Shown here piece after piece: positions 222-31,253 of a DNA stretch of 64,000 nt. The DNA is from Macrostomum lignano (taxonomy: Eukaryota). The stretch lies in assembly GCA_002269645.1 (NCBI GenBank), contig NIVC01000326.1, forward strand, positions 496,001 through 560,000, in the 5' to 3' direction. Each line of letters opens with the position of its first letter. The first letter of the stretch is position 1. The notes below the pieces were generated by a model. The model was given only the letters and a program-made list of their open reading frames with translations, ran no database searches and was not told the origin of the DNA. The position numbers and the translations under genes are program-made.

Positions 222-1535
222 AAAACTTCCTAGTACAGTACCTGATATTTAACTGCAGGGGTTTACGGGGGATTCCCGCGAGTCTCGCCATAACGCCTCC
301 GCTTTCTCTATAAGAATTAGCATGCAGCAAAGCATTACAGAAAGGCGAAACTTTAGTCCCAGCTTTCCAAAGGATCTCAGCGAGCGATGGAGCACACGCA
401 AGAAGCTGCAGGCACTGCTCCGATGACCCTGGCTAATCAAGTCAACGCCGTGAAAGAGCAAATTGAGAAGCTGCTGAGCAGTGTGATGGACTACCGATCG
501 CAAGAGGGTGTCTGGCCTGGAGACCTCCAGCCCGAACGCTTCGACGCCTGCTGCCGCCTGCTCGAACTTCTGGCCTCGCCGAGCTGCATTGAAGGGCGAT
601 TCGTGAGGAAAATCAACTACCCCCACCTGAGACTGCGCCTGCAGAGTGGAGCCAATGCCCGGCAGAGCTCGCTGGCTTCGCCGGACTTCAGGTGGCCGGA
701 CACTGGGTCTCGACTTCGTCTGCAGCTGCGAGTGGCACCGGCGACAGAGGCTGGTGGTGAAGATGAAGCTGCCTTGGAAGTTGAGCTGCTTCTGTTGCAG
801 GTAAGCCGAGCCGATTAACCCAACTCGCGAGCAGGGGCAAAAGTTACGAGTTCTTGTACATGCAGACAGCGTCCTGCTGTAGTTTCATCTTAAGTCCCTT
901 TAAAATAAAATAATGCGATTGCATGTGAGATGCTTGTACAATCTCTGGAACCACAAGCAAACCACAGTGTACCATGGTGCAGCCATGAAGCATTCATTCA
1001 CCGATCACACAGAGCACCGTCCAGCAGAGGCCCCTAAGAGCCCGCCTGCAAGCCCGCCTGATTGATCTGCGAGATCCATCCTGTGGAGGCCTGACCGGCC
1101 AATCGGAGACGTTCAGCATCGATCAAACCTTGTCGGAGCTCGGCGACCACCATCAGCGAGCCTGCTGTGTCTTGCGCGACTGGCCAGCGAAACTGGGGCA
1201 TCTTCGCAACCGGCTGGATGCAGAGGGCGGCTGGCAGTTTGTGAAGAGCAGCTGCGCCTACCTAGAAGCGATTGTCACCGAGGTCCAGCAGTAACTATTT
1301 TCGATCTAAAGCCGTTTACCTACAGTAATTACTACTGGCTCTGGGTTCTTGGAGTGGCTTTTGGTGTGCCTTATTACTAAACATCGTTTTCTTATTCCGA
1401 GTGATTACCGCTGCAACTTGTGCGGAGTCAGTTGCTAAACTGCTTTAAATAACATCTCTATTGAGTCTCTTACACCAGCCGACTCAAATATGAATTTTTG
1501 AGCTCACGTTCATGTTGAGGCGAAATCTTATGATT
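222..1535. repeat. ~1.3-kb segmental duplication, copy 1 (copy 2 at ~19085-20343)
   Basis: Sequence from AAAACTTCCTAGTACAGTACCTGATATTT to ...GAGGCGAAATCT aligns by eye with 19085-20343, with scattered substitutions and small indels. Confidence 0.9.
387..1294 (+). CDS. MATH/TRAF-domain-only protein, two exons (387-800, ~1028-1294); paralog of 19250-20132
   Basis: Exon 1 has EGRFVRKI and SLASPDF (TRAF-C 'DGxLIWKI' and 'SLFSPPF' equivalents) and ends at a CAG|GTAAGC donor at 800/801. After acceptor ...CCAGCAG| exon 2 reads RPLRARLQARLIDL...WQFVKSSCAYLEAIVTEVQQ*, matching the MATH C-terminal strands. Confidence 0.7.
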
Positions 1536-2270
1536 TTGATGAGACGAGACAGAGGTCCGCACAGTTAAATAAACGCTTTAAATGAATATTTTATTTTAAC
1601 TTTTATAACTTGTAGATTTGTTTTAGGGTAAGAAAAGGCTTGGCCACTGCGCGGCCTTGAGCGCCAATATATATTTAGAAATCGATATTTGCGTGGGGTG
1701 GAGTTGCGCCTGATAAACAAGAAGCGTGCAAGCTGATTGGCTGCAGAGCGCCGGGGGCAGGCATTGTACACTTGAGGGTCAGAGAGTTAAACGGTGTACG
1801 GCCAACATCCTTCCCCAAGCGGATAAAAGTTAGGAGATAAGAGCAAATGGGAAGCTAAGTAAACATTTCGAAGTGGGAATCAGAGTGGAATGGATGTGAG
1901 TGAATAGTATGAAAATATACGGATGTGAGAGCGAATATTCATTAGGGCATAAACACAAATATGAGCATGGATGATAGTTGAAGCATTAGTTACGATCAAA
2001 TGAGCATTGCTTATGAAAATAGACACGAGCATTAGTTTCGAATATAAAAACGAGCATTAGTTTCGAATATAAATACAACCATTAGTTTCGAATATAAATA
2101 CGAGCATCATTTGCGAATATTTGGCCTTTGAAGCAAAAGCTAAAAGCTATGCAGCTGAAGATTAAAAAATAAAACGAGACCGGCAGGGACACCCCTTTAC
2201 CAAAAATGGGGAGCGCGCAGTTTGCTTGTAAAATTTAAAAGATCAGTCAGTTTCTCGCAAGGTCAGTCAA

Positions 2271-4967
2271 TTAGCTCAGTGGTTTAAACTCATTGGTCGG
2301 CTTTACACGCACGTGGGTGAGCCGCAGCGCGACTGACTCGGGTGACTTCGACCTGCCTTCGGTCGGTGGCGGCGTGGGCGGCGGTGGCGGGAAGTCGGCC
2401 GTCGGCAGGCGCTTGAGGTCCGTGATGTGGCGCATGCAGGACTCGTGTGCTCTGCGCAGGATGAGGGAGTCGCCTTTAACCTCCTCGACGACCCACGGCT
2501 CTGGCTCGAAGGGTGTCTGCATTTTGGAGGCAGGGCGCCGCCTGCGCAGCACCGAGTCGCCTGCCATGACGTTGTGGCTGGCGGCTCTTCGGTGCTCATC
2601 TGCATGGCGCGCCATCCGTTGTTTGGCGGCGCTGTCGCGAGCCCTGACCGCGGCCAAAGTGCTGGGCACTCGGCTGCGCTGCCGCATGCTGGGGATGCAG
2701 TCTTGCACCTGTCGCTGGAACATCAGCTCCGCAGGGGTCGCTCCAGTGCTGCTGTGCGGCGTGTTGCGGTAGGCCTCCAGCCAGTCTTCGAGTGCGGCCC
2801 GCCAATCGGATTTCTCGATGCTTGCGATGCGGATGATCTTGTTAATCGAGCGGTTGATGCGTTCGGTGACTCCATTAGCTGCCGGGTGGTACGGAGTGAT
2901 GGAGCGGTGCTGCACGCCGTTGCTGCGGAGGAAGTCGTGGAAGGCTTGCGAGCTGAACGGAGGCCCGTTGTCTGAGACGAGCTGCGCTGGTCTGCCGAAC
3001 GTGGAGAATAGCTTCCGGAGCTGCTTGGTGACCGCCTCGGCTGTCATGGACGACATGCTGATCACTATCGGATAGCGGGAGAAATGGTCAACTATGACGA
3101 GTAGATGCTTGTTTTGCACTGGCCCGGTGAAGTCGATGCCCAGGGTGTGCCAGGCATGCGGTGGCAGTGGTGTGGCTTGCAACGGCGCTGCTGGAACTTC
3201 GGCCTGATGACTCGCAGCTTGACACGGGAGGCAGACGTTGCACATCCGCTGCTCCTGTCCTGCCATACCGGGCCACCAGACCTTCGCCGATAACCTCGCC
3301 TGCGTCTTCTTTGCTCCCTGGTGTCCTTGGTGAGCGAGCCGCAGCACCGTCAGCTGCAGCGCTTCGGGGACGACGATGCGCTGGCCTCTCAGTAGGATTC
3401 CGTCTGCTGCGGAGAGCTCCTGCTTGACTGCGTGCAGCGACCGCAGGGTAGCCTCTCGGAGATCCCACTTGCCGCCTCGGAGTGCTGAGATGGCTGCTTG
3501 GAGGGCTCCGTCTCTCGCTGTTGCATCCTTAAGCTGTTGCAGCGCCAGTCCCTTTGGGGTCGAATCCTCGGCAATGCTGTTGATGTAGTGGTTGTCCCTG
3601 GTTGCTCCGGCGCTGGAGACCGCTGATGCTGGGAAGATTTGCCGGCTTAGGACGTCACTGGGATTGGTCGAGCCTGGCCTGTACATTGTCTCGAACACCA
3701 GGTCCTGGATGCTCAGTGCAATCCTCTCGATTCTTGGTGGCGGATGCGACCCTGGCTTAAATAGGTGCACCAGCGGCTTGTGGTCAGTGACGACCCGGAA
3801 ACCGGACGAACCACTGAGGTAATGGCGGAAGCGCAGGCAACCGAATTTGACGGCGAGGGTTTCTCTTTCCGTCTGAGAATAGCGCGTCCCCACCGCTGAC
3901 AGTGCGCGGCTTGCGTAGGCGATCGGTCGCTGGCTGCTGTTGGCTGAGGATCGCTCCGAGTCCCGTCGGGCTGGCATCCACGATCACTTCTGTGGGTCTG
4001 CGCTTGTCAAAGAATGCCAGTGTGCTGCTCGCGGAGATCGAGTTCTTGATGGCGCTGAAAGCAGTCTCCTCAGCCGCTCCCCAGGACCACGGCGCATCCT
4101 TTCTGGTCAGATCTCGCATGGGCTTGGCAATGTCTGACAGGGCTGGGATAAAGCGACTGACAAAAGCCACAAGGTCGAGAAAGGACATCACTTCGGACGC
4201 GTTTTCGGTGCTCTGAATGCTTTCACAGCGCTCACCTTCTCGTCTGTCGGTTGGATGCCCTTCTCGGAGAGGCGCATAGCGAGAAACTAGGCCTCCTTGA
4301 CGGCGAACTTGCACTTTGCAGGATTTAAGGTGATGTTGTGCTCTTCTAGCCTTTGCAAGGTTGCCACTAGCCGCTGGTTGTGCTCAATGGTGGAGCTTGC
4401 ATAGATGATAATGTCGTCATGTACCCAGCGGACTCCTGGTCATGACTCGTTGTAGAATCTCAGACGCTGACGTAAAGCTCATGCACAGGCGCGTCAGTCT
4501 CATGAGACCCTTCGGCGTCGAAAATGTCAGCAGTCTTCTCGAACGCGGATCTGGTGGAACGCCTTGTTGATGTCCAACTCGGTGAAGTAGCGCGCACCGG
4601 CCATTTCATCAGTGACCTCTTCAAAAGTTGGTATGGGCTGTTTCTCAGGCACTACGAACTTGTTCACATCTCGCAGATCTTGGGTAATGCGCACTTGGCC
4701 AGGCTGCGACTTCGGGACAAAAACTATTCGTGCCACCCATTCGGACGGTCCGGTCACTTTCTCGATTATTCCAGCCTGCAGTTGATCGTCGAGCTCGCGC
4801 TGCGCAGCCTCCCGCAGATGCACGGGGATGCGACTTGGCGGATGGCAGACCGGCACGGCTCCGTCTTGCAGGTGGATGCCGACTTCAACGTCCTTGACGT
4901 ACCCAATACCCACAAATCGCTGCCTGAAGGTCTTGATAATGTTGCTGAGGCGCTCGTGCTGTGGCAT
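2271..4967 (-). pseudogene. Gypsy Pol (RT-RNase H-integrase) split into several frames
   Basis: RT start 4527-4967 (PSEWVARIVFVPK, FTELDINKAFHQI); VRWVHDD in a shifted frame near 4430; RNase H VDASPTGLGAILSQ and TDHKPL; integrase HQGHQG...C..C, GIDFTG, SDNGPPF, NGVTER. There are stops and frameshifts between the pieces. Confidence 0.88.
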
Positions 4968-4999
4968 TGCCTGATCGTCTGCCTCCGTCGCTGCGGCCG

Positions 5000-6205
5000 C
5001 TAATGCAGCGCTGAGTGGCTCATGGAACTCACCAGAGTCTGACAGACGCTGGGATTGCTTGGTCCGATGCGTAGGATTCCCAGCTCCTCGCTGGTTTCGC
5101 GGCCCACGATCGTCGTGCCCGTCTCCTTGACGATGATGTAGCTAATGCTGGCACTGACGTCATAAACGGCGGTCCGGAGGGTCGCTTTGCCAAGAGTGGT
5201 GAGGGGTTCACTGGAGCCAAACGGAAAGACCCGCTGCTTTGACTCACGAAGGTCGTCTGCCGTGCCTCCGATGGCCTGGAATGTTTTTGAGTCCATTAGA
5301 TTGCAGCTGGCGCCGCTGTCGATTAGCAGGTCTGTGGCGTGGCCGTTGATGTCTGCTTTAACGAGCGCCAGTCGCTTACGCTGTGGCGTCAGGCAGAACA
5401 CCTCGCAGCTGCTGTCACTGTCTCGCTTTTGCTGATCACTCGGCTGCTCCTCGGCAATGGCATGCACCTTTCTGGGGCTCGCGGGTTTGGACAAGCACGC
5501 TTTTGCCAGGTGGCCGACCTTGTTGCAGTTCCGACACGTCTTTCCTCTTGCCGCCTCGCACGTTCGGTGGCCCGACTCTCCACAGCGGATGCACTTTGTT
5601 CTGGTTCGCTCTGGTCGGTCTGGCTTCTCGATACGCCGCATTACGTTCACAGACTCGCTCTTCCGCGCTTCGATGACTGCAGATTGAAGGTCGGCCGCCT
5701 CGAATGCCCTGGCTTGCTGCAGCGCTTCTTTGAGCTGGATATTGGGTGTCTGCAGCAACCTGCGCCGGAGCTGGTCTGCCTGGCAGCCGGCGACAATTTG
5801 GTCTCGGATGATGAGATCCCACTGAGTCTCGAATTCACATCCTTCTGCAGCCTTGAACAGCCGTTGCACCCAGGCCTTGATGGCTTCGCCGGGCTGCTGC
5901 GTGCAGTGCCGGAATTCATATCGCACGAATACCGGGTTGTGCCTGCTCTTGAAGTACTCTTTGAGGGCGTCCAGGAGCTCTTCGAGGGTCTTGCCTGGCC
6001 TCGTGAGTTCTGCGTACGCTTCAGCCACCTGTTTGCCGCCGACGTAAAGTAGAATCTCTCGTTGTTGACTTGCATCTGTTATGCCGCTTGCAGTCACAAA
6101 GCACTTGAATCGGTTGGCGTATTCTGCCCACCGTGCTGAGAGGTTGTGTGGCTCTTTCTGAGTATCGAAAGGCTCAGGCGGGGGCAGTTGTAGAGGCACA
6201 GACAT
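5000..6205 (-). CDS. Gypsy Gag + aspartic protease
   Basis: Likely ATG at 6205 (MSVPLQLPPPEPFD). Two Cys/His knuckles (CIRCGESGHRTC, CRNCNKVGHLAKAC) and protease motif LLIDSGAS. Confidence 0.88.
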   Translation of the reverse strand: MSVPLQLPPPEPFDTQKEPHNLSARWAEYANRFKCFVTASGITDASQQREILLYVGGKQVAEAYAELTRPGKTLEELLDALKEYFKSRHNPVFVRYEFRHCTQQPGEAIKAWVQRLFKAAEGCEFETQWDLIIRDQIVAGCQADQLRRRLLQTPNIQLKEALQQARAFEAADLQSAVIEARKSESVNVMRRIEKPDRPERTRTKCIRCGESGHRTCEAARGKTCRNCNKVGHLAKACLSKPASPRKVHAIAEEQPSDQQKRDSDSSCEVFCLTPQRKRLALVKADINGHATDLLIDSGASCNLMDSKTFQAIGGTADDLRESKQRVFPFGSSEPLTTLGKATLRTAVYDVSASISYIIVKETGTTIVGRETSEELGILRIGPSNPSVCQTLVSSMSHSALH

Positions 6206-6422
6206 TCTTGCTAGCGATGCCAATGTAGATTTGTTTTGGGGTATGAAAAGGCTTGGCCACTGCGCGGCCTTGAGCGCCAATATATATATTTAGAAATCGA
6301 TATTTGCGTGGGGTGGAGTTGCGCCTGATAAACAAGAAGCGTGCAAGCTGATTGGCTGCAGAGCGCCGGGGGCAGGCATTGTACACTTGAGGGTCAGAGA
6401 GTTAAACGGTGTACGGCCAACA

Positions 6423-8883
6423 GGTAGTAGCGGCAACTAAAGTTAATGAGCTCAGACTGCGAGGCAAACATGCGGGAGGCGGCATCAGCAAAAATCTGCA
6501 TGCGACCAGGAAGGTGAAAGGCCTCCAAACTGATGCTGTTCCTGATGCACAGCAGAGCCACAGTCTGGTACACCTGCAGGAACCGCGGGTCACGACAGCT
6601 CAGCCAATTGATCATGCCAGCCGCAGCGGTGCTGTCGGTGTAGATGACAATCTTGCAGTTCTTTAGCTGAGAGCGACGGTGCATGATGATCAGCAAAGGT
6701 GCCAGAGCCTCCTTGAAGTTGATATGAACATCCTTGAACACACCACCGCAGTCCAGCTCCCAGTCGATGACACTCCAGAAACTCTCGGCACCCCAGATGA
6801 CTGCGGCTGCGCCCGACCGGCTGCTGTCAGTTTCCATGGCAAATTCCTCATCAAAGCGCGGCCACAAAGCCACCGGGGGGAGCCAAGCCAGGGCTCTGAG
6901 CCACCAGGACACGTTGGCGCGGGTCTCATCGGTCACCCAAAGCTTGCAGTCAACAGCAGTTGTCAGCCAGTCGAAGAGCGGACGTAGGAAGACTCTGACA
7001 TGAGGGACAATCTGACAGAACCAGCCAAGCTTGCCAATCAGCTTCTGAGCAGAGCGCATGTGCACCCGAGTCTCCGAGCAGGTTTGAGTCAGCAGCTTTG
7101 TCGTCTTGAGAGCTTTCTCCTCGGGCAGCGACTTGGTGCCGGTAGCGGTATTGATGCGCACGCCAAGGAAGTCGATGCATTGCGTAGGTCTGACAACCTT
7201 GTCCCAGTTGATGGCAAAGCCGAGGCGCTGCAAGATGTCCAGCAGGCAATTGAAAGCAGCGAAAGCCTCGAACTCGGATTTCCCAGCGACTGCCCAGTCA
7301 TCCAGGTAGTTCACCGTGGCAGAAAAACCAAGCCGGTGCATGTGCCGGGTAACGGCGGCTGAAAGACGGTGAAAAACTTCGCAAGCAGCTTTGGCGCCGA
7401 AGGGAGGCCTGGTGTCGCAGAGCAGACTGTCCTGGCTGTCTGAGTCAAACCGCCAGGCGAGGCCGACGAGCCGGTAGTCAGCAGGCCTGATTGGCACGGA
7501 CCTGTAGGCGCTTTTGAGATCAATTTTGGCCATGTAGTGTCCCGGACGGAGATGACGAACCAGCTGCTGGACAGTGCAGTACTTGATGTGCTTCTGTTGG
7601 TCGTAGAAGTCGTTGACAGACTGGCCGGTCGGATAGGACAGGTCATGGATCAGGCGGACCCGCCCGTTGGACTTGGGAAGGGCACCGATGGGGTTGATTT
7701 TGATCGGGCCGCTCCACCGGATGTACCTCCCAAGGCGCAGCTCCTTCTCGACCTGGGCTTCCACAGCAGAGCGGTGCAGCAGGGCGGAGGCGTGGTTCTT
7801 GGACGAAGTCAAAGGTGGCTGGCCAGCATTGGTGAGAGCGAAACCGTTGACGACGCCTTGCATCAGAAAGTCGCGGTCTGGGTCGTCGCTGAGCAGAGAA
7901 CTCCAGGCGTCAGGCTGCAGGTCAGACGAGATGGGCAGCGAAGAATTAAAAGCAGAAAAATCGGAATTAAAAGCAGAGCAGTCAGCTGGATAAAATGGCA
8001 TCAGTTTTTTGCATTCGCACCGGTGCTTGTGGTACAACTGAGGGGGCTCCTCACCCCACGCCATACTCGTCTCCGCCACCAACCTCCAGTAGTCCTCGTC
8101 AAACTCCCAGATTACGGACTCCGGGTAGTCAGCAGCCAGCAGCTCTCCAATCTTGCGATTGTAGTCAAGGTAGCCAAGGACGTCAGTCAGGAAACCATCA
8201 GTGCTTCCAGCAGCCGCCGGGAGTTTTTCCTTGATCAGCTTTTGCAAGATGATCGAGTTGGCCGCGATCCACTGACCAGCAGAGATACTAGACAGCTTCG
8301 GCCCCTGCTTTCTGAATGTGAGCGAGCCATTCTCCATAGTGGCGATCAACTGCTCCTGACTGGCTGAGCCGGGTCCTCTGGCTAGCTTGATATGGTCTCT
8401 GACCAGATGCAACTTGCGAGTCGGAGCCTGGCAATTAGCGGCCTGAAGCTGAGCCGCCTCCCTCATCCCAAATTCAAAAACCTCGGGCAACTGCAGACTG
8501 GCATGTGCGTTATGCTCACCTGATGATGATGCTGGCTGGGGCTGAGCCGTCAAGCGCTGCTGAGTGTGAAGCTGTTGCTGAAGATCACGACGACGGCCTT
8601 CCAGGACTTGCAGTTCGAGCAGCTCCACCTCCTGTCGCAGCGCAGCCAGCCGGTCACTCCACGCCCCCAGAAGCGCCTCGCCCGCGCTGCCGAAGCCGTC
8701 CTCGGCGTCCGGAGCAGAAGAAGTCATCTCGGAGTTGTTGAAGTCTTCGTCAGCTTGCTCTAAACCGAGTGCAGTAGACAAGCGCTTGGCAAGCTGTTGT
8801 TTGCGGCCCGTAGTAGGCAGGCCTCCGTTTCGCAGCTCAGCCTTGAGTTGGCGCACGTTTAGTCGCTTTGGGCTGGCACTCAT
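6423..8883 (-). mobile_element. DIRS/Ngaro-type (tyrosine-recombinase class) retroelement: SAP-like + Gag + RT + RNase H in one ORF, truncated at the Gypsy LTR
   Basis: ORF 6394-8940, likely ATG 8883. RT motifs MAKIDLKSAYRSVP, PPFG, NYLDDW. RNase H motifs TDSS, HINFKEALA, YTDS, HLPGRMQIFADAASR. Gag-type YLDYNRKI...WEFDEDY...WG. No protease or DDE integrase. The last codons are contributed by the LTR. Confidence 0.85.
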
Positions 8884-9055
8884 GGCGGTGGCTGAGCAAA
8901 AAAAAGAGAAATGGCGGCCCCCAACTTGCGAAACACACAAAACTCAACTCAAGCCACTCTATTTCAACAACTCTAGTCTGACTGTCGCTTCAAAATTGAT
9001 TGGTCATCACACCAGTCAGGTTATTAACTATTTCATTATTTTCCATCACATGAGC

Positions 9056-15466: not shown

Positions 15467-16194
15467 GCAGGTCTACTTTTTCCTTTAGCTGCTTCTTCGA
15501 CTGGTTATGAGCCATGGTGTTGCTGAATTGCTGGTTGCTGATTTCTGCTGACCCGGGAATGGTCTCGGGTTTGTATGTATAGCCAGCCAGGTGCAGGCAG
15601 AGGTGCATCCGCGGTTAGCCCACGAAAACAGAAGTTGGGCGCCAGAAACTGGCGGCAATGTACGCGCTGCGGCACCTCCATGGGATTCCCAGTTCTAGAT
15701 AATAATAGACCAGCCAAGTGTCACAGTTTGGTACCCGGTTGAAAGTACTTTATTAATAATGCTCTAAAAATAGACGCAGACTTATCCACTCCGTTTTCAT
15801 GGAAAATCCCTAGAGTAATTAGTAACTGAATTTATTAGTAATTTAAAAAATCTGTTAAAGTACGAGCGTACTATCCAGTTAACATTACTAAAGCAAATTT
15901 ACCTTGAAAATGGGGCTGTATATTGATTTATTTATAGAGCACAAACTTAACAGAAGAAAAGAAAAGGCAGGCACTCTTTGATAAAATTTAAGTTCTTCCT
16001 ACCTAACGAGACATGGCTGTCTGCTGAAAGATACCCAGGATAAACAAACTGGCGTTTCAAGCCAAAATAGAAGAAAATGTCAAAATATTTTCATTGAAAG
16101 CAAAAGTATCAGAAAAAAGGTGATTAAAAATTCATAAAATTAGTAAGAAAAATCTGGATATTGCTGCTGGTTGAGCTCAGAAACAGCTGCTCTA
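15467..16194. repeat. ~728-bp near-identical duplicate of 17398-18126 (5' end and upstream region of the MATH-only gene)
   Basis: Identical text from AGGTCTACTTTTT to AAACAGCTGCTCTA, with only about two differences seen. Confidence 0.93.
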
Positions 16195-16849: not shown

Positions 16850-17446
16850 TCACTGCATCGCCTTCGTGTGCACGTGCAGGTAGGCGGCCTCCCCGACGGT
16901 TGCGGCGTCCAGCCAGTCCTCCGGCAGCTGCAGCTCGCAGCAGCGCCGCCTCTCATCGCCGTCGGACTCACTCGGCCGGTCGACATCGGGTCGAAAATTC
17001 ACGACGCCGAAGGCGCGCCCGTTAGGTTGGAATTTGCCACCGACAAACTCGGCCGACACTTGCCGGACAATCGGCCACGTCAGCAGGTCGTCCAGCTGTC
17101 CGGGAACAGTCAGCACTGCAGCTGCGGCCGCGCCCTGCTCGATCTTCAGCTTCAGGATGAAGCTGTACGGGTTGCCAGCCTCAATTGGGCTGTAAAAGTG
17201 GTTCGACAGCTGCGCGACTGTCTGTTGGTAGCTCAGCTGCCGCCACTGATCGGGCTGGAAGATTTTCAGGCAGGTGTCTCCAGTGTCGCAGGGGGCCTCC
17301 AGCACCTTCTGGAGCGCGTGGTGCGCCGTCTCCGCGGTCTTCTGGTGCTCGATCTGGAGCGCGGGATTGTTGGTGGCCATCAGAGCGGCCCGCAGATGCA
17401 GGTCTACTTTTTCTTTTAGCTGCTTCTTCGACTGGTTATGAGCCAT
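16850..17446 (-). CDS. Divergent MATH/TRAF-domain-only protein (intronless)
   Basis: Likely start MAHNQS (ATG 17446). LSNHFYSP...YSFILKLKI...GQLDDLLTWP...AAYLHVH match the TRAF-C 'SxxFY / GYKFxLRL / GExDxLLxWP' pattern. Confidence 0.72.
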   Translation of the reverse strand: MAHNQSKKQLKEKVDLHLRAALMATNNPALQIEHQKTAETAHHALQKVLEAPCDTGDTCLKIFQPDQWRQLSYQQTVAQLSNHFYSPIEAGNPYSFILKLKIEQGAAAAAVLTVPGQLDDLLTWPIVRQVSAEFVGGKFQPNGRAFGVVNFRPDVDRPSESDGDERRRCCELQLPEDWLDAATVGEAAYLHVHTKAMQ

Positions 17447-18205: not shown

Positions 18206-18841
18206 TCAGAATGATGCAGTCAGGTGGGCGGTCAGGTAGGCCGCATTGTTAACTGTGGCCTCCCTGAGCCAGTTCTCAGGTAGCTGCATCTGGCAGCAGA
18301 GTGGCTCCTCTTCATCGGCAGCTGCTCCAGTAGTCAAAGTCGGACGGTGGACATTGCGGAGAAACGGCGCTCTACCGAAGCTGCATCTCTCCGAGCCGAA
18401 CTCGGCCGAAACTGGTCCGGCCATCGGCCACGTCAGCAGGTCATCGAACTCACCGACAGCTGCCAGCACGGCAGCCGTGGCCGAGCCATCCTCGAGCTGC
18501 AGCCTCAGTTGAAACTTGTACCCATAGCGGGGTTCATTGGGGCTGTCAAAATAGAAATGGTTGGAGAGCAGCTGGATGCGATGCCTTGAGCTCAGCCTGG
18601 CCCAACGCTCAGGCTCAACGATTTTGAGCACAGTCATCCCAGTGTCGCAAGGTTCGCAGAGCAAAAGCTGGAGACGGTTGCTCTCACGTATTGCCTCTTG
18701 CAGCATGGCATCGTCCGTTGAAGTCTCCTGAGCAGTCAGGGCTTGCAAAATCGACTGCTTGCACTGATCGATGGCTGCCACATCCTGCTGAGCATCCGGT
18801 CCGTGCGACATTGATGGCGGCAAACCAGTGAAGAGCTTCAA
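18206..18841 (-). CDS. Divergent MATH/TRAF-domain-only protein, tandem paralog of 16850-17446
   Basis: PCDTG..LKI, LLSNHFYF, YGYKFQLRLQL, GEFDDLLTWP and CCQMQLPENWL are shared with the neighbour. Confidence 0.75.
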   Translation of the reverse strand: MKLFTGLPPSMSHGPDAQQDVAAIDQCKQSILQALTAQETSTDDAMLQEAIRESNRLQLLLCEPCDTGMTVLKIVEPERWARLSSRHRIQLLSNHFYFDSPNEPRYGYKFQLRLQLEDGSATAAVLAAVGEFDDLLTWPMAGPVSAEFGSERCSFGRAPFLRNVHRPTLTTGAAADEEEPLCCQMQLPENWLREATVNNAAYLTAHLTASF

Positions 18842-19249
18842 TATGTCTCAGTTTAGTAGCTAATGGAGACATTTTTCGGCAAGGTAAAAGTTCCCTTTGT
18901 TTTGTAGTCAAGACAATGGCGGTGCCATGGGCAAGGCCTCGATTGTAAAAAAAGCCATGGAATTCCCTCGCCATTTGCAGCAAGTGTACTCCAGCTCTAG
19001 TATAGCGTAGCCGTTCACAGCTAAACTGCCTGGGGCAGGGAGCAGGCGGGGATAAAAATAGAACAGCTGTGCAGCAATGACGACAAAACTTCCTAGTACA
19101 GTACCTGATATTTAACTGCAGGGGTTTCACGGGGGATTCCCGCGAGTCTCGCCATAACGCCTCCGCTTTCTCTATAAGAATAAGCATGCAGCTAAGCATT
19201 ACAGAAAGGCGAAACTTTAGTCCCAGCTTTCCAAGGATCTCAGCGAGCG

Positions 19250-20132
19250 ATGGAGCACACGCAAGAAGCTGCAGGCACTGCTCCGATGACCCTGGCCAAT
19301 CAAGTCAACGCCGTGAAAGAGCAAATTGAGCAGCTGCTGAGCAGTGTGATGGACTACCGATCGCAAGAGGGTGTCTGGCCAGGAGACCTCCAGCCCGAAC
19401 GCTTCGACGCCTGCTGCCGCCTGCTCGAACTTCTGGCCTCGCCGAGCTGCATTGAAGGGCGATTCGTGTGGAAAATCAACTACCCCCACCCGAGACTGCG
19501 CCTGCAGAGCGGAGCCAGTGCCCGGCAGAGTTCGCTGGCTTCGCCGGACTTCAAGTGGCCGGACGCTAGGTCTCGACTTCGTCTGCAGCTGCGAGCGGCC
19601 CCGGCGACAGAGGCTGGTGGTGAAGATGAAGCTGCCTTGGAAGTTGAGCTGCTTCTGTTGCAGGTAAGCCGAGCCGATTAACCCAACTCGCGAGCAGGGA
19701 CAAAAGTTACGAGTTCTTGTACATGCAGATAGCGTCCTGCTGTAGTTCAGCTTAAGCGCCTTAAAACTAAAATAATGCGATTGCATGCGAGATGCTTTTG
19801 CATCCTCTGGAACCACAAGCAAACCATAGTGTACCGTGGTGCAGCCATGAAGCATTCATTCACCGATTACGCAGAGCACCGTCCAGAGGCCCCTAAGAGC
19901 CCGCCTGCAAGCCCGCCTGATTGATCTGCGAGATCCATCCTGTGGAGGCCTGACCGGCCAATCGGAGACGTTCATCATCGACCAAAGCTCGTCGGAGCGA
20001 ACCTGCTGCGTCCTGCGCGACTGGCCAGCGAAGCTGCGGCATCTTCGCGACCAGCTGGATGATGAGGGAAGCTGGCAGTTTGTGAAGAGCAGCTGCGCCT
20101 ACTTAGAGGCCATTGTCACTGAGGTCCTGTAA
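19250..20132 (+). CDS. MATH/TRAF-domain-only protein, two exons (19250-19663, 19887-20132)
   Basis: EGRFVWKI and SLASPDF; donor CAG|GTAAGC at 19663/19664; acceptor GTCCAG| at 19886; exon 2 ends WQFVKSSCAYLEAIVTEVL*. Confidence 0.75.
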
Positions 20133-20552
20133 CCAAAACCGTTTAAATCCAGTAATTACTGCTGGCTTTTGGTTCCTGGTGTGCCTTAACACAAAACTGC
20201 TTTTTGTTATTCCGCTTAATTACCGCTGCAACTTGCGCGGCGTCATTAGCTAAACTGCCTTAAAACATATCTATTAAGTCTCTTACACCAGCTGACTCAA
20301 ATAATAATTTTTGAGTTCACGTTTATTTTGAGGCAAAATCTAAATCATTTTTAAGAAAAAGAAAAGCTTAAATTTAAATACACCGTTAGAAGGAATTTTT
20401 TTAATTAACTGTCCAAGTTTGTGACGAATACATTATGCATGAATTCATTAAAAAGTTAATTACAATTACAAACGTCATGCCTTCAATTCAACAATTAAAA
20501 TCAATGCAAATCCCATTATCAAAGAGCTGCATCATGCAGAAGTCTATCATCA

Positions 20553-23500
20553 TCACCTGCGACGGGACCGCCGACATGCCTCTTTGGTCCGCGGCTCCAC
20601 CTCTACGTCCAAGTAGACGCAGTCGTTTCTCACAAAATTCTCCATCAAAGTGTCCATTTTAACAAAGTGCATGACGGTCGCATTCCTTGCCAGATCGGGC
20701 GCAGCCGCAGGGCGCTCGGCAGTCAGGTCTGTCTCAGCCACAGCATCCCCCAAGCGGGACTGTCGATGAAACAGACGGAAAGTGACTTTGGCAACAAGCG
20801 GCCATTCAAGCGTGTCGTCGTATTCGCCTCGGTTGAGCACCAACTGGGCCGTCACGTGACCCTCGCCTGGCTCGGCCTGCCCGTTTAGAAGCAGCCGAGC
20901 GCAGAAAAAGTAGCCGCAGTGCTTGGACATGAACGGCGGCGAGAACAAGCAGGCGGACGCGTCTTTCTTCAGCTTCTCAAGTCTAGCGGCCACGTCGTCA
21001 ATCTTCCACGTGATGCAACCGTCCAAGGAGGTCTGATGCTGCGCATTAAAAGGCCACACAGACCTATCCTTAGTGCAGTCACCGGATTCTTGAAGAGCTA
21101 CCGTCTGCATCAGCTTCATCAGACGCCAAACTTCAGCAGGCGTAGTTGAAACTGCGGTCGCTAGGACCCCGGAACATCGCTCAGCAGCCTCCATCTGTCT
21201 CAACTTGTCGTCCATATTTGTCAGCATTGTTTTGAATCCTTGAAGACCTCCGAAAGATTTGATGAAGTCTTCCAGACTCATTGTAGACAGTGCCCAAGTC
21301 GCTATGTTTGGCTGCAGCCCTTTGAACTTGCTGAAAATATTCATGGCTCTGCGCTCCAAATCCTTCATCTCCTTGGATACGGCCTCTCCTTACACGGTGA
21401 CCGCGGACGCTCCATCACCTGCGGCACCTGCACCAGCTGCACCAGCTGCAGCCGCACCTGGAAAGCCACTGGCAGGGCTGTGCTGAGCTGATGCGCTGGA
21501 GACCTGCAGTTTGGCGTCGATGAGCTGAAGGTGCCTGTCGGCTGCTTCGCTGCAGTGAGCCGCCATCTCTGTGGCCGGAGCGACAAAGTCGCAGCCAAGA
21601 TGAGCAAATCTGCACGGCGTCGGCTTCTGAGGGCACTGGGACAGGTGGCTGAGAAATGTTTGCCGTTTGAAATTTCCCTCACGGCAGTGCGGACACGGAG
21701 CTCTGAACTCCCGACAGCAGGACGCCGATTGCAGGTTCTTGTGCTCGGAGTCCATCGCGCCAGCAACTACCTGTGGGTTATCAATAATTAAATTTAAGTT
21801 TCATTGATTGGGCTTTACGAAGTTATTTTTGCGATGCCTGCGATACATGTAAAAATTTAAGGAAGCAAAGGTATATTTCACTATACTGTCTACTGCAGAA
21901 GTAGTATAAAGTGTTATTAATGAAAGATTTCTCTATAATTCCAGTACGCAAGTCCAGTAATTTAGAGTTTGACAATCTCATGCCCCAAGGCCAAAGCTTC
22001 ATGCACCCAGGGGACTCGTGCTTGTGTAAACGTGGGTGCACTTGACTTACTTGACTTAGCTGCAGGGCTGTCCCGAAGGGGACACAGCGGGAAGGCGCGG
22101 GCGCCCATTCCGCTAGTCCCTGAACGGCCGACGCGTCGCTATGGACGGAGGGTTGGCGCCGCCCAGGGAGGTCCCCCAGTGTCGCCAGCAGCTATGGTGC
22201 TCTCTGGAAAGGAGAGTTCAGCCCTGCGGGTGGCCCGAAGGTAGCGCATGAGCTGATTAAAGTTTTCGGGTTTGCACGCTTCAGTAATAGATGTGTGTGG
22301 CCCGAGGTAAGTGAGTCTGGCCCGCGTGAAGGCGGGACAGATGCTGACGAAATGCTCAGCGGTTTCGTCACCTGAGTTGCAGAAGCTACAGGTGGCGTTG
22401 GTGGCGTTGCCCTGCAGGTACTGGTGCCTGGAGAAGCAGCCGTGACCAGAGAGGGTCATGGTGGCAGCCCGGATGTCTCTGCGCGAGAGGCGCAAGAGGA
22501 GCTTCCGGAGCTGGTGAGAGGGCTGAGGGACAGCGCCTCTGGATTGCCTGCAGTTCGTGCGGTTCGCCCAAGTCGAGCGGTGCTGAGTCCTGATCCACGC
22601 TTTGATGCGCGAGTCGATGACACAGCCAGGAATCGGGACAAGAGGTTCGGGGCCGAGAGAGGAGCCGGAGGCACCAACTTTTGCAAGGGTGTCAGCCAAC
22701 TCATTTCCTCGGATCCCCACATGCCCCGGAACCCACTTAAGGGTAATTTTGTTGGCGGAACCCAACATGTTGAGGAGTTTGATACAGTCGAGGACTGTAG
22801 CAGAGTTGGTGCTGCAGCCACTGATGGCGTGCAAGGCAGCTTGGCTGTCCGAATGGAAAATGATGTTCTTACCAGTAACGCCAGTGGCGAGAAGCTCTGC
22901 AGTGCAGGAGCTGATGGCCAGAACTTCATTTTGGAAAACACTGGAGTTGACCCCAGTGTATTGAGCGTGGGTAGCGATGACCCTCCCGTTCAGAAAGATT
23001 CCAACACCAAAGCCGGTGTTGGCTGACTGCTTAGAACCATCGGTGTAGCAATGAAGCTCACCAGGGTTCCATTGGTCATTGATGTTATCGCGCGAGTCGA
23101 TAGCTACGGAGTAGCGCTGTCTCAGGTTGAGCGTTGAGGCAATGCCATCGGTGAAGACGCGATTGGCCTGACACTCGTTGAGAAAGTTGAGGCACAGATC
23201 GCTATGCGGGACAAGGTTCCGCTTAGCAGGTGCTCTCATGTAAATGAATTTGACGCCGGCATCAATTAGACGCCGCGTCGTTCTAGCCGCCTCACCCCTG
23301 ATGAAGAGGTCAAGAGGCGGAAGATTAAGGAAGGCCCCCATGCCAGCAAAGGGCGTGGACCTGGTGGCGTTGCAGATGAGCCTACACGCTCTGCCTTGGA
23401 TCGTGTTGAGCAGGTCTGCATGGCTTTTGACCTGGGTAGCGCTAACCCAGACAACAGAGGCGTACGTAATGGCAGGTCTAACTACGGAAGTATAGATCCA

Positions 23501-25636
23501 CCAAAGCCGCTTTGGGGATAGACCCCAAGAAGTGCCAAGTGCTCGTCGGAGCTGGGCCAGGATGGCTGAGGCACGCTTGGCTTTTGCTTTCACGTGGGAG
23601 GACCAGTTGAGCCGGTGGTCAAGTATGACCCCGAGACATCTGGTCTGGTGCGCGAAGGCAATATCTCTGCCGTAGAGCTGCAGAGGACGTATGTTCCAGC
23701 GTAGTCTGCTGGTAAACATAATGGCAACGGTTTTGGGCTCAGAGAGTTCCAGACCATTGTCATTGGCCCAGGATTCTGCTTTGCGGATAAAGCTCTGCAT
23801 CAGATCCCTGAGCGTGCTGGGAGACGGTCCTGCCACAATGGCCGTGACGTCATCAGCATACCCGACTTTGAAGACGGGGTCGGGTCGGGAGTCACTCAAA
23901 AGAGCGTCCATGACCAGGTTCCAGAGCGTCGGGGTGAGGACTCCGCCTTGGGGTCCACCCTTACAGACTCTGGTGGAGGCAGTTTGCCCAAGAAGTTGGG
24001 CAGTGACCGTACGGTTGGAGATCATGTACATGATCCACCGTATGAGGGTAGCATGAGCTTTGCGATTTTGAAGGGCCCTCTGAAACGCTTCAAAGATAAC
24101 GTTGTCGAAGGCGCCAACAATGTCAAGAAAGAGAGCCAGAGCGTAACCGTCACCCAGTACCGCCCTTTCAATCTTCTCGACAATCGCATGCAAGGCGCTG
24201 TCAGTCGACCTCCCGGTACGGAAGGCGTGCTGATTATTGCTGAGGGGCATCGCTGTCAGCTCGCAGGACAGCAGCCGCCAGAGAATAAGCCTCTCAGTGA
24301 GCTTAAGCATTGCTGACGTTAAGCTAATAGGCCGGAAGGCCTTGACGCTTTGGTAGTCACCCTTCCCAGGTTTGGGAATAAAGACTACCCGAGCTTCAGT
24401 CCAGCATTTGGGAACGTATCCCAGCTGGATAGAGGCCCGCATAAGATTGCGGGTGAGTCTCAGGAACGAGGGTATCTTGGCTGCTTCACGAAGGAGAACA
24501 GGGTAGATACCATCAGGTCCAGGAGATTTGAAGGGTTTGAAGGTTCTGACCGCACGAGCGATTAGGTCTTCAGTGACAATGCCCGCCGCTAGGGTGGCTC
24601 CATCCATCGAATGGTTGGGCTCCGGTCTAGCAGTAGGTACCCTCGGGAAGAAAGTGCTGAGCATATGCTGAAGCACTTCTTCAGGGTCTTTAGTAAGAGA
24701 GCCATCATCTTTTTTGATCATGGCTAATTTGGACATTTTGTCCATTGTAAGGGCCTTGACAAGCCTAGAAGTAGGTCTGTCTTGATCCAATTCATTGCAG
24801 AATTGGCGCCACTTACATTCCTTGGCCTTGCGCACTTCAGATTTGAAATTGCGGGAGGCTTGCCGGAAAAGCTCCATGTCCTCCGGGTTTCCGGTCTTCA
24901 TGGCACGGCGATGAAGGCTTTTGGCCACACCCTCCGCGGCTTTCCGTCTCTAGTAACGCGCCCCACCTGAACATTGTGCTGTGGAGGGTTTCTAGTGCTA
25001 TAATTTGCTTGTGCTACCTACATTGAACAAACAGAAACAGATGTCTAACTGCTGATTACTATAAATCAGTTTAAAAAATTATAAACTGTAACGGGAAATT
25101 GTCACCAGCAAAAGTACGCACTTCTGGTACGTAACTGTACTTAACTTGGTACGACACTCATCACAGTTGACCAGCCTCCGTCTGCAAGCGCTCCTCTTGT
25201 GCTCATCCAACTCTCTCTTCAGCGTTGCCTCACCGCACATTTCGCACTTCACCTTCTCAAATTCGCAATCTGCCAGGTGAGCGTCGGCCTGTCGCCATGG
25301 AAACTCAGCCGGACAACCGTCGGCCTTATTCGGACAGAACACCTTCAGCTTAGTGAGCTCTCGCCGAGATGCGATGTCGGGAAAGCAGGACGACTGGCAG
25401 ATGTTGATCTCCTCATCAGGGTCCTTGCAGGCGTCGCTCTTGCCCGGACACGGCACCTTGTCGGTTGCTGGCAGGCTGTCCACACAGGACTGGCACAGGC
25501 GGCAGCCGTGCGGTGTCTGGAATGAGTTGGTCACCGGCCTGGAGCAGCTGCTGCAGCGCAGGTGGCTTGGCAGACTGCGCTCGTCTACCAGGCTGGCTGC
25601 GAGGGCGCGCGTGGAGAGCACAATGCCAGCGGACAT
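20553..25636 (-). pseudogene. TRAF family gene copy A (RING-ZnF-coiled coil-MATH); exons 25636-25145 and 21770-20553; apparently disabled
   Basis: RING CSSC...HGCRLCQSC; TRAF zinc fingers CPNKADGC...HLADC, CEMC...HKRSAC, CPHC...HLSQC; MATH DGCITWKI, LFSPPF, GEYDDTLEWP, FVRND. In-frame TAA at 21390-21392. The donor reads AAG|TTAAGT where copy B has AAG|GTAAAG. Confidence 0.88.
22041..24960 (-). mobile_element. 5'-truncated non-LTR retrotransposon with RT + RNase H (LOA/R1-group-like) inside the TRAF-A intron
   Basis: ORF 22139-24928: PGPDG, RPISL, QHAFRTGRST, FLDIVGAFD, PQGGVLTPTLWN, GYADD; RNase H YTDGSK, SDSQAAL, WVPGH.GI.GNELAD; C-terminal CSFC...ETAEH. 3' tail (TAAGTCAAG)x2 at 22041-22058. 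No endonuclease domain present. Confidence 0.92.
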
Positions 25637-26386
25637 AATTCTGTAAATCCCTAAGATTAAACTTATATAAAATTGCTGCTGGCCTTATCCTGATCACAGA
25701 CAGTACAACATGTGGATAATAAATTAATCTAGTTTAGCAGGTACTACCTTGTAGGTCAACTGTGTCTAAATTAAGAGCGGCGAACACTAGAACTTTACAA
25801 CAAGCGCGTACTTTTTCTTTCTACTCGTATTTCCAGCTCATACCGTACGGTATAAAGAACTCTAAAGTAAATTCTATGCATTCACGGCGCACACACTGGC
25901 ATGGCATACCATTGTACACTGCTACGTACATGTACCATGTACGGTGGGATATATGCAGTAGCAAAGCAAGCAGCATTTTCATGGGTCAGCAGGAATGCAC
26001 TTCAGACGCCAATATACTTCAGTAGCGTCTAGGCTAAAAGGAACTACCTTGTAACTAACTGGAAACCTCCAGTAAGTAAATTAGATTGTTATCAGTGCTT
26101 AACACTCTGCAGTGGCCTGGACTGTTTTAATCTGCAAAAGCTGGAATATCCGACACTACACAAACGACAAGTACATAAAGCTATAGTAAAAGCCTAAGCT
26201 CAAGTTCAACATTCGGGACGCCAGAATCCGCGCAACTCGTTAAATACATTTTTACCAGCAAATACTCATTTTAACGCGAAACAGTCGCTTTGTCTGCATT
26301 GCGCCTATATAATAGACAACTTTGTTTAACTATTTCCAGAAGTGTGGTTGATTTAAAATTGGGTTTTGTTTAGTTCTTCTCGCCCT

Positions 26387-28565: not shown

Positions 28566-28951
28566 TAAATTAATATTGGTATCATAGTGCCATATATATT
28601 TGAACATATACGTTCGAAGCCACTGAATTTACACAGAATGCCGAATGCCGATCAGTTTTCACGAAGATGAATTAAGATTCGAACGCGCTACCATTGTTTC
28701 AAGAAATTATGGTCAGTAGTATCAAGGTACCAAGGGCAGTTATTTATTTTAGTTGCAGACTTGTTTATAGTCGAAAAGTAGGAGTTTGAGGATTTGGGAT
28801 TTAAGCTTCAGCATTGTTAGCAATATTGGCTCTCTATGCTAGCTCGGTACGCTTTGACGCCAACAGACAGATAATCAGTGTATTTCTATTTCTGATTACG
28901 GATCAAGAGAAAGCAAGCGACAAAGTCAAGAGAAATTTTAAAATTCAAATT

Positions 28952-31253
28952 TTATCTTCGACGACCCCGCCGATTTGCTTCGCTCGGCCTCGGCTCAACT
29001 TCGGTCTCAATGTAGATCGAATCGTTTCGCACAAATTTCTCTTCAAGGATGTCAATTCTAACAAATCTTGTAACTGACGCATTTATTGACAGATCGCTTG
29101 CTGCTGGCGGTTTCTGTGCCGACAGAGTCGCCTTAGCAACAACATCGTCCGATCGAGTTCGAGGATGCAGCAGACGAAAGGTGACGTCGGCAACAAGCGG
29201 CCAGTCCTGCACATCCTCGTACTCGCTCTGGATCAGCACCAACTGAATGGTCACGTGACTGCCCTCGGCACCCTCCTGCCCGTTCAGAAAAAGGCGAACG
29301 CGGAACATGTAGCCGTAGCGTTTAGACATGAACGGCGGCGAGAACAAAGAGACTGGGGAGCCGCTCTTTGCCTCCCTGCGTCTGGCCGCGAAGCCAAGCA
29401 CCTTCCACGTTAAACAGCCATCAAATGAGGTTTGTTCCAGGGTTTCAAAGCGAAGCTCGATTGCCCGCATCTGCTCCATCAGCCGGGAGACATCAGCAGA
29501 TGAGGCCGAAGCTGCAGCTGCAGATGCTGCTGAGGCGCCAGTGGTTCCTGCTCCAGATCGCTCAGCAGCCTCCATCTGTCTCAACTTGTCGTCCATATTT
29601 TTCAGCATTGTTTTGAATCCTTGAAGACCTCCGAAAGATTTGATGAAGTCTTCCAGACTCATTGTAGACAGTGCCCAAGTCGCTATGTTTGGCTGCAGCC
29701 CTTTGAACTTGCTGAAAATATTCATGGCTCTGCGCTCCAAATCCTTCATCTCCTTGGACACCGCCTCTCCTGACCCGGTGACCGCGGACGCTCCATCAAC
29801 TGCGGCACCTGCACCACCTGCAGCCGCACCTGGAAAGCCACTAGCAGTGCTGTGCTGAGCGGATGCGCTGGAGACCCGCAGTTTGGCATCGATAAGCTGA
29901 AGGTGCCTGTCGGCTGCCTCGCTGCAGTGAGCCGCCATCTCTGTGGCCGGAGCGACAAAGTCGCAGCCAAGATGAGCAAATCTGCACGGCGTCGGCTTCT
30001 GAGGGCACTGGGACAGGTGGCTGAGAAATGCCTGCCGGTTGAAATTTCCCTCCGGCAGTGCGGACACGGATCTCTGAACTCCCGACAGCAGGACATCGAT
30101 TGCAGGTTCTTGTGCTCGGAGTCCATCGCGCCAGCAACTACCTGGGGAGGTTGTTCAAGTTTTCTGTAATAGATAAACTAAGCAATAATTTTACTTGATA
30201 ACTAATAACTTTTTCTACTCAGTAGTAAAGGAAGGATATTTTGCGTCAAAAACGTTTTTCTTTCAATATTTGTTTGTTAAGAGCGAGAATTGAAAAGTTA
30301 AAAGTGGTTCCATTTAACGACGTAAAAGAAAGTTCGCGTTCAAAACAGTAAAATTCTGAAGTAAAATATTAAATTGGCCTGACCGAGTCGACAAATTCCA
30401 CCCAAGTCTCGATCTCCCGCTTTGGTGCGACATACTTTCGTACGAATGCCTTTCGCTGGATTGGATCTTCATTGGATTTTGATGGAACAGGCATCTCAAG
30501 CTAAATATGCCTTGCAGCTAACTATGCATCACATCAAGCTTTTCGGTTACATAAGGAGGGAAGGAAATAATGAATAGGAGCAGAGGACAGGCATTTCCAC
30601 TCTCTTATCCAGTTTAATGTACGATAGGCTAAAAATAGATCCGGCTTGTTCAACCAATCGCGTCTAAGTCCGTGCAACCATAGCTTTAGACATTTATCAC
30701 CCAACCTCAATAGTCGCCTTAGTTAAAATTCACAAAAATTGAGCTTAGTCTAGGGCTTTACCTTGATTTTACAGTCATCGCAGTTGACCAGCCTCCGTCT
30801 GCACGCGCTACTCTTGTGCTCATCCAACTCTCTCTTAAGCGTTGCCTCACCGCACATTTCGCACTTCACCTTCTCAAATTCGCAATCTGCCAGGTGAGCG
30901 TCGGCCTGTCGCCATGGAAACTCAGCCCGACAACCTTCAGACTTATTCGGACAGAACACCTTCAGCTTAGTGAGCTCTCGTCGAGATGCGATGTCGGGAA
31001 AGCAGGACGACTGGCAGATGTCGATCTCCTCATCAGGGTCCTTGCATGCGTCGCTCTTGCCCGGACACCGCACCTTGTCGGTTGCTGGCAGGCTGTCCAC
31101 ACAGGACTGGCACAGGCGGCAGCCGTGCGGTGTCTGGAAGGAGTTGGTCACCGGCCTGGAGCAGCTGCTGCAGCGCAGGTGGCCCGGCAGACTGCGCTCA
31201 TCTACCAGACTGGCTGCGAGGGCACGCGTAGAGAGCACAATTCCAGCAGACAT
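28952..31253 (-). pseudogene. TRAF family gene copy B; exons 31253-30762 and 30141-28952; one 1-bp frameshift near 30053
   Basis: Same RING/ZnF as copy A with canonical GT-AG sites. MATH DGCLTWKV, SLFSPPF, GYMFRVRLFLNG, WPL, FVRNDSIYI. Reads CACTGCCGGAGGG where copy A has CACTGCCGTGAGGG. Could be intact if this is a sequencing error. Confidence 0.85.

Follow-up and report, generated by a model that had tools for sequence, protein, structure and literature searches.

The stretch of DNA analysed in this work, referred to as the window (W), comprises 64,000 nucleotides and corresponds to about 496-560 kb of contig NIVC01000326.1 in the Mlig_3_7 assembly (GCA_002269645.1) of the flatworm Macrostomum lignano; positions 9241-30132 of the window match this contig with 100% identity. 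A cluster of TRAF-related genes occupies its first 31 kb. The cluster comprises two full-length TRAF loci, designated TRAF-A and TRAF-B, two short single-exon open reading frames (ORFs) encoding a TRAF domain only and referred to by their first positions as 16850 and 18206, and two copies of an orphan two-exon gene, 387 and 19250. The original prediction, made from the sequence alone, had described a TRAF/MATH cluster with RING-less members lying beside full-length TRAFs, and this description was upheld by Pfam MATH matches, by profile matches to PDB structures and by a profile-profile comparison (hhalign) with a probability of 91%. The number of MATH-containing loci, originally put at six, was reduced to four firm ones (TRAF-A, TRAF-B, 16850 and 18206), the assignment of 387 and 19250 being doubtful, with no match in Pfam, PDB or Foldseek searches.

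Full-length TRAF genes and the copies of the cluster

Both full-length genes consist of two exons and lie on the minus strand. TRAF-A occupies positions 20553..25636 (exon 1, 25636-25145; exon 2, 21770-20553) and TRAF-B positions 28952..31253 (exon 1, 31253-30762; intron, 30761-30142; exon 2, 30141-28952). The exon junction ...DDCKIK/VVAGAMDSEH... was verified with an intact 560-aa orthologue of TRAF-B (P0001, 99% identity). The layout of the full-length proteins is a RING-like N-terminus followed by TRAF zinc fingers, a coiled coil and a MATH domain; the intact TRAF copy is named 'TRAF4' in UniRef. The C-terminal TRAF-C/MATH domains of TRAF-A and TRAF-B exceeded the Pfam cutoffs for PF21355 (70 bits) and PF22486 (63 bits), the MATH E-value being about 2e-19. 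The zf-TRAF family PF02176, whose cutoff is 27 bits, scored 30-32 bits in the TRAF-A exon-2 ORF and in the intact orthologue. None of the Pfam RING models matched the TRAF N-termini at E<=10. The N-terminal 170 residues aligned to the RING and zinc finger chains of TRAF6 crystals (5vo0, 3hcs) with E=1.8e-16, and also to the corresponding chains of TRAF5 and TRAF2. The RING-like motif, located at approximately 31168-31120 in TRAF-B and 25551-25503 in TRAF-A (minus strand), reads ...TPHGCRLCQSC... versus ...TPCGHRFCKAC... in TRAF6, i.e. zinc ligands 3 and 4 are swapped (PHGC versus PCGH).

The TRAF cluster is present three times in the assembly. The second copy, on contig NIVC01002298.1 (L004), is 99.1% identical to W over 14.3 kb (window 11789-26054), and besides the sites discussed below the two differ at 87 other positions across this common stretch. 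The third and most diverged copy, on contig NIVC01001081.1 (L001 and L002, hereafter L1 and L2), is syntenic with the window from 8732 to 40415; most of its aligned blocks are ~90-98% identical to W and a few are near 85%. Both TRAFs are intact in this most diverged copy. It has been reported that ~70-85% of the genome of the M. lignano DV1 line is present in three paralogous subgenome copies (PMC10733133), and the three copies of the cluster appear to match these three subgenomes. Mlig_3_7 is a Canu assembly of PacBio reads with Pilon polishing, and its GenBank annotation consists of transcript models based on RNA sequencing (RNA-seq), from which the models overlapping repeats were removed (PMC5730564).

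The divergence between TRAF-A and TRAF-B is distributed very unevenly. From exon 1 through the zinc fingers to the 64th codon beyond them (the start of the coiled coil) the synonymous divergence (dS) was 0-0.14, versus 1.0-1.24 in the MATH domains, where the ratio of non-synonymous to synonymous divergence (dN/dS) was 0.27-0.34. On the L2 contig the first exons of TRAF-A and TRAF-B also showed a dS of only 0.014. The values indicate that gene conversion homogenises the 5' two-thirds of the two genes while their MATH (peptide-binding) domains stay distinct and, judging from dN/dS, appear to remain under purifying selection. As the dS of the MATH domains is ~1, the duplication must be old. The conversion boundary is sharp and lies near window position 21176 in TRAF-A and 29557 in TRAF-B.

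TRAF-A carries three lesions. An in-frame TAA codon is found at 21392-21390, where the equivalent TRAF-B codon is TCA. The splice donor AAG/GTAAG has been changed to AAG/TTAAG, with TT at 25144-25143. Finally, a 2.98-kb long interspersed nuclear element (LINE) has been inserted into the intron (22026-25008); this non-LTR (long terminal repeat) retrotransposon contains a 929-aa ORF for reverse transcriptase and RNase H (22139..24928, minus strand; Pfam RVT_1 E=9e-28, RNase_H E=6e-11). The TAA codon and the TT donor, checked site by site, are common to L004, whose alignment with W runs unbroken across the LINE. In the L002 orthologue both exon ORFs are open, the donor is GT and the LINE site is empty. 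TRAF-A in the window is a true pseudogene. Its dN/dS between W and L2 was ~0.5 (0.12 for TRAF-B), which would fit relaxed constraint along one branch, and no frameshift indels were seen between the dead TRAF-A and its L2 counterpart. The intact L2 TRAF-A is missing from the GenBank annotation.

The sole lesion of TRAF-B is a 1-nt deletion, GGG to GG, at 30053-30052, which causes a frameshift. The remaining 371-aa ORF (28955-30067) shares 99% identity with the M. lignano protein BOX15_Mlig005413g2, and the GenBank annotation of TRAF-B covers only the C-terminal 328 aa (P0007) downstream of the frameshift. Two further M. lignano models from UniRef bear on the nature of this deletion. A0A1I8HIC9 (P0008) has window-type residues and is intact over 560 aa; the model P0002 has L1-type residues and contains the same frameshift. 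Which copy bears the deletion therefore varies with the set of gene models. Both UniRef models presumably come from the older ML2 assembly. The dN/dS of TRAF-B versus L1 was 0.12. The three copies being nearly identical, the odds are near even between a real, very recent frameshift and an error of the consensus or the polishing.

In its broader form, the second explanation would hold that the lesions of both TRAFs come from the PacBio assembly of three near-identical copies and that both genes are intact. The one-base change in the length of a G run, the intact frame of P0008 and the frameshift of P0002, the low dN/dS of TRAF-B and the published figure of 93% of reads with more than one mapping position all speak in its favour. 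The three lesions of TRAF-A are independent, of different kinds and common to two contigs that differ at 87 sites, and the assembly was polished with Pilon, which argues against an artefact. An assembly origin of the lesions as a whole is possible but stays clearly short of even odds. Of the two disabled full-length TRAFs in the original prediction, TRAF-A is thus dead, on account of its stop codon, donor and LINE, and the loss of TRAF-B, a single base in a G run, is doubtful.

TRAF-domain-only reading frames

The ORFs 16850 and 18206 are single-exon tandem paralogues located on the minus strand, and both are unannotated. The first (16850..17446) encodes 198 aa from MAHNQ, the listed ORF reaching 17539, and the second (18206..18811) encodes 201 aa from MSHGPD. 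Their products are 42% identical, and in that of 16850 a divergent MATH domain comes after a short helical stretch at the N-terminus. To compare them with known structures, a profile (A6) was made of the four available sequences of the 16850/18206 type. Its best match in PDB was the TRAF domain of TRAF1 (E=5.6e-5), TRAF2 was matched as well, and 14 of the 16 matches were TRAFs. The alignment with TRAF1 takes in the end of the TRAF1 coiled coil. The hhalign comparison of the two ORF products with an alignment of the local TRAF-C domains gave a probability of 91% with P=1e-6. Neither RING nor zinc finger similarity was detected by tblastn around 16850 and 18206, and the space upstream of them, only ~440-760 bp each, leaves no room for further exons.

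The Pfam model TRAF-mep_MATH scored 24.8 bits with 18206, under the cutoff of 27.4, and the L2 copy of 18206 reached 13.8 bits in Pfam; no MATH match was obtained in the Pfam search of 16850. The AlphaFold2 (AF2) models were built from two-sequence alignments, and the one for 18206 predicted helices followed by ~8 strands at low confidence, with a predicted local distance difference test score (pLDDT) of 39. The same model used in Foldseek against PDB retrieved TRAF domains at all of the top 11 places, with template modelling (TM) scores of 0.44-0.55. Since the AF2 models are of low confidence (pLDDT 39 for 18206 and 37 for 387), the evidence from the fold is weak. The modelling and profile check suggested with the original prediction gave a divided answer: 16850 and 18206 matched TRAF1 and TRAF2 in the profile search and 18206 matched TRAFs in Foldseek, and 387/19250 had no match in Pfam, PDB or Foldseek, at pLDDT values of 37-39 for the models. 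On balance, 16850 and 18206 were accepted as putative RING-less proteins consisting of a coiled-coil stalk and a TRAF-C domain.

A recent origin of the two ORFs as truncated copies of TRAF-A or TRAF-B was rejected. The A6 profile scored 11-17 bits against the neighbouring TRAFs and 26 bits against human TRAF1, and no RING or zinc finger remnants are found nearby.

Several observations argue that 16850 and 18206 are genes. Their reading frames are open in all three genome copies, 16850 being intact in L004 and also in L002, where it has one in-frame deletion of 33 nt. Comparison of 16850 with 18206 gave a dS of ~1.07 and a dN/dS of 0.52 (Fisher p=4e-4), and the indels that separate them all preserve the frame. 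Between W and L2 one in-frame indel was found per ORF, and substitutions amounted to 2.5% and 5.4% in the two ORFs. In 2 kb of flanking and intergenic DNA the same comparison showed 8.8% substitutions and 40 indels (19.6/kb), 34 of them not a multiple of 3 in length. About 11 indels would be expected per ORF versus the 1 observed (Poisson p about 1e-4).

These observations have to be set against the view that 16850 and 18206 are relics, i.e. former genes that drift neutrally and are open only because little time has passed. Since the split from the L2 copies the two ORFs have accumulated 35 non-synonymous and 11 synonymous changes, giving dN/dS of 1.16 and 0.94, which are neutral values, exceed the long-term one (binomial p=0.026) and are as expected if constraint had been relaxed. 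Moreover, 16850 is shorter by 11 codons near the last strands in its L2 copy, both ORFs are missing from the RNA-seq-based GenBank annotation, and no corresponding protein was found in the public protein sets, which were searched with the 18206 sequence and the four-sequence profile and by exact look-up. The Pfam scores, below threshold or nil, point in the same direction. The dead TRAF-A is also free of frameshift indels, so the depletion of indels is a weak discriminator over this time span. All these points weigh against functional genes. The missing annotation weighs little because the intact L2 TRAF-A is unannotated too, and the relic view does not account well for the frames being open in all three copies, for a divergence lower than that of the flanks with one in-frame indel in place of ~11, or for the long-term dN/dS of 0.52. 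Taken together, 16850 and 18206 are probably real, fast-evolving genes, and recently relaxed relics are the unlikely, though by no means negligible, alternative. As regards the question of neutral evolution raised with the original prediction, the long-term ratio speaks for constraint and the ratio of ~1 since the copies split speaks for neutrality.

The recent dN/dS of ~1 could also be read in another way. The TRAF-domain-only genes, perhaps together with 387/19250, might be Macrostomum-restricted, fast-evolving RING-less TRAF decoys retained in all subgenomes because microbes or viruses aimed at TRAF signalling impose diversifying selection on them. If so, the recent ratio would reflect a mix of positive and purifying selection and not decay. 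We regard such decoys as improbable.

The two-exon orphan gene, retroelements and other features of the window

Both copies of the orphan gene lie on the plus strand. Copy 1 (387..1294) is composed of exon 1 (387-800), an intron with a GTAAG donor (801-1012) and exon 2 (1013-1294), and it encodes 231 aa. Copy 2 (19250..20132; exon 1, 19250-19663; exon 2, 19875-20132) encodes 223 aa and corresponds to Mlig023964.g2 of the RNA-based annotation. Splicing of copy 2 yields exactly the GenBank proteins PAA85470.1 and PAA59073.1, and a third orphan copy, PAA72546.1, adjoins the intact TRAFs in the L2 contig. The ORFs 387..818 and 19250..19681 had been taken for complete genes of 143 aa, and this was rejected: their ending, VSRAD followed by a stop, is a read-through of the GTAAG donor. 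Because the annotated protein confirms the splice, these ORFs are exon 1 continued into the intron. The original prediction of four clean MATH-only genes accordingly holds for the open frames of 16850 and 18206 and has to be dropped for the ORFs at 387 and 19250, which represent only the first exon of a two-exon gene.

The 387 and 19250 genes are 92% identical. Three indels in the coding sequence of the orphan copies are in-frame, and a fourth, of 14 nt, lies at the end of exon 2. The dN/dS among the paralogues was 0.29-0.40. When 1.84 billion representative proteins were searched exhaustively with a profile, the only match was P0004, which is itself from M. lignano. With the RNA-based annotation, the dN/dS of 0.29-0.40 and the sole match in M. 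lignano, the orphan is regarded as a real, transcribed and lineage-restricted gene. The gene identifiers Mlig023964, Mlig002318 and Mlig005413 are not mentioned in the literature.

The relationship of the orphan gene to MATH domains is much less clear. Neither Pfam nor PDB gave a MATH match for 387/19250, which counts against their inclusion in the family, and hhalign between the 387 family and the 16850/18206 family was not significant. The AF2 model of 387 found no TRAF match in Foldseek, a result that is uninformative at a pLDDT of 37. Weak signals were obtained with the A6 profile (1-3 bits, p about 0.01-0.05) and with a hidden Markov model (HMM) of the local TRAF-C domains (5-10 bits, 5.3 for 387; p 1e-3 to 1e-4 in composition-preserving local shuffles). 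The alignment with the latter extends collinearly between the strands GxxxWKI and FVKxxCAYLE, and hhalign of 387/19250 versus the local TRAF-C gave P=0.039. From these comparisons there is about an even chance that the orphan protein is a very divergent MATH derivative.

The 19250 gene is arranged head-to-head with the 18206 ORF, ~440 bp apart (18811-19250), which suggests a bidirectional promoter shared by the two. Only 165 bp of the upstream region between 18206 and 19250 are retained by orphan copy 1.

Three retroelements lie in the 31 kb of the cluster. In addition to the LINE in TRAF-A, a Ty3/gypsy-type LTR retrotransposon with degraded gag-pol is located at 1611..6422 (minus strand); its LTRs (1611-1807 and 6224-6422) are 98% identical, and its Pfam matches are rve, Integrase_H2C2, RT_RNaseH, RVT_1, zf-CCHC and Asp_protease. 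A second retroelement ORF of 848 aa (6394..8940, minus strand) matches RVT_1 and SAP. Three satellite arrays (9314-10913, 11789-12752 and 13464-14590, with units of ~50, 18 and 35 bp) are located between these elements and the 16850 gene and yield long spurious ORFs on both strands.

Partial duplicates were also identified. A 729-bp segment, detected by self-BLAST and tblastn at 15467..16194 (minus strand), is a 99.7% duplicate of 17398-18126; it covers the upstream region of 16850 and the first 47 codons of the extended ORF and is absent from L2 by synteny. A third TRAF exon 1 at L001 16144-16600 (= L002 20399-19948) has a 3-nt deletion and is cut by a CT-rich low-complexity repeat, a type also found in the window at 9090-9252 and 16244-16399. 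Both the 729-bp copy and the truncated exon represent ordinary duplication debris.

The original prediction regarded the locus as a lineage-specific immune array of adaptors or decoys, adaptive in nature, with new members generated by transposons and a birth-and-death turnover. RING-less TRAF-domain genes do cluster beside TRAFs, three retroelements are present, the LTR element abuts the 387 duplicate (222-1610), which stops exactly at the element start (1610/1611), a partial duplicate exists at 15467-16194, and the recent dN/dS of ~1 could mask diversifying selection. The duplications, with dS of ~1, are however older than the split of the subgenomes, and the nearest relatives of the MATH-only genes are not the TRAFs next to them. 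Gene loss is limited to redundant copies, as the third copy of the cluster keeps both TRAFs. Neither transposon sequence nor a target-site signature that would show a mechanism was found at any of the duplication junctions; the creation of members by transposon-mediated rearrangement is thus not supported, the LTR element only abutting the 387 copy. An adaptive array of this kind is quite unlikely.

The remaining part of the window contains several unrelated features. The segment 32362-40415 is dense in tandem-repeat arrays (32362-33028, 33509-34145, 35517-36194, 36797-37386 and 38789-39491) and shows synteny with COG2 in the paralogous contig. It is followed on the minus strand by the COG2 N-terminal exon (40701-41342) and by an exon of a DIM1-type rRNA adenine dimethylase (43438-44085; PF00398, E=1e-33). 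At 43294-43655 there is a 360-bp element whose counterpart, with 96.7% identity, is found within the TRAF cluster of the paralogous contig (L002 4413-4771). A second Ty3/gypsy-type gag-pol, largely intact-looking, occupies 50337-55710 on the plus strand in a strongly GC-rich region, and its ORF holds a tandem array encoding an AAGSTAAT repeat. In the AT-rich block at ~56-64 kb, an ORF similar to parvovirus-VP1-type phospholipase A2 (60365-61108, minus strand; PF08398, E=2e-13) is overlapped by an integrase-core (rve) ORF (60896-61933, plus strand). These two ORFs may belong to a Maverick/Polinton-like or endogenous viral element.

Origin of the cluster and comparison with known systems

As a whole, the window is best explained as one of three copies of an old, partly decayed TRAF cluster in the neopolyploid M. 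lignano, a reading to which we assign a probability of roughly 70%. The ancestral cluster would have been built by old tandem duplications and would have contained two full-length TRAFs, two single-exon genes for a stalk and a divergent TRAF-C domain, and the orphan two-exon gene. The full-length TRAFs would exchange sequence over their 5' two-thirds via gene conversion, and triplication of the genome would then have made copies redundant. TRAF-A would have died in W and in its 99% sister copy through the nonsense codon, the loss of the donor and the intronic LINE, and the single-base frameshift of TRAF-B would be either very recent or an assembly error. Because the most diverged copy keeps both TRAFs intact, this 'death' is understood as the loss of redundant copies after polyploidy and not as a turnover of the family. 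The birth-and-death process originally proposed is thus retained for the duplication debris and the dead TRAF-A; it has to be qualified in that the duplications are old (dS ~1) and the loss reflects redundancy after polyploidy.

RING-less TRAF1 acts as an adaptor or negative regulator. By analogy, the RING-less proteins of the cluster might enter TRAF trimers or bind to receptor tails while contributing no E3 ligase activity, thereby modulating or attenuating the signals of TRAFs. This TRAF1-like mechanism is predicted from the domain architecture.

The analysis is of value for annotation in several respects. Two conserved TRAF-domain-only ORFs of ~200 aa are absent from all public protein sets, a family annotated as 'hypothetical protein' (Mlig023964 and Mlig002318) is possibly a strongly diverged relative of MATH proteins, and one TRAF locus, TRAF-A, needs to be marked as a pseudogene. 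In addition, the region provides a clear local example, in a neopolyploid flatworm, of gene conversion of the RING and zinc finger part with the MATH domain kept distinct, and of the loss of redundant copies after genome triplication.

The full-length proteins TRAF-A and TRAF-B resemble TRAF6 (5vo0, 3hcs) in their N-terminal halves, which align to its RING and zinc fingers. They differ in zinc ligands 3 and 4, which are H-x-C and not C-x-H, and in the lack of a match to any Pfam RING model. The best PDB match of 16850 and 18206, vertebrate TRAF1 (5e1t, 5h10), likewise combines a coiled-coil stalk with TRAF-C and has no RING. The flatworm proteins measure only ~200 aa; TRAF1, which is not their orthologue, has retained one zinc finger together with a long coiled coil.

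In nematodes and plants, MATH-only and MATH-BTB genes form tandem, fast-evolving arrays with pseudogenes and belong to a BTB/CUL3 adaptor branch. The tandem, fast-evolving MATH domains with pseudogenes alongside are shared with the cluster described here. The flatworm domains, in contrast, resemble the TRAF-C branch and not the BTB/CUL3 branch.

The closest parallel is the TRAF/MATH expansion of Schmidtea mediterranea, where 99 transcripts with 121 MATH domains have been described (PMC6109357). Neither RING nor zinc fingers are present in many of the planarian TRAF-like proteins (PMC7586133). The same species is also known to have a 'TRAF-1-like' protein that consists of MATH only (PMC6109357, PMC7586133). 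Both animals are free-living flatworms in which lineage-specific multiplication has brought together full-length and MATH-only members. The differences are that Macrostomum is not a planarian, that in the present case the genomic cluster, the pseudogene and the gene conversion were directly seen, and that the Macrostomum MATH-only members are far more divergent (under the Pfam cutoff) and unannotated. Since RING-less TRAF/MATH expansions have already been described in flatworms, the locus does not represent a new kind of system. It is an ordinary, partly unannotated example, from a different lineage, of the known lineage-specific TRAF/MATH expansions of flatworms.

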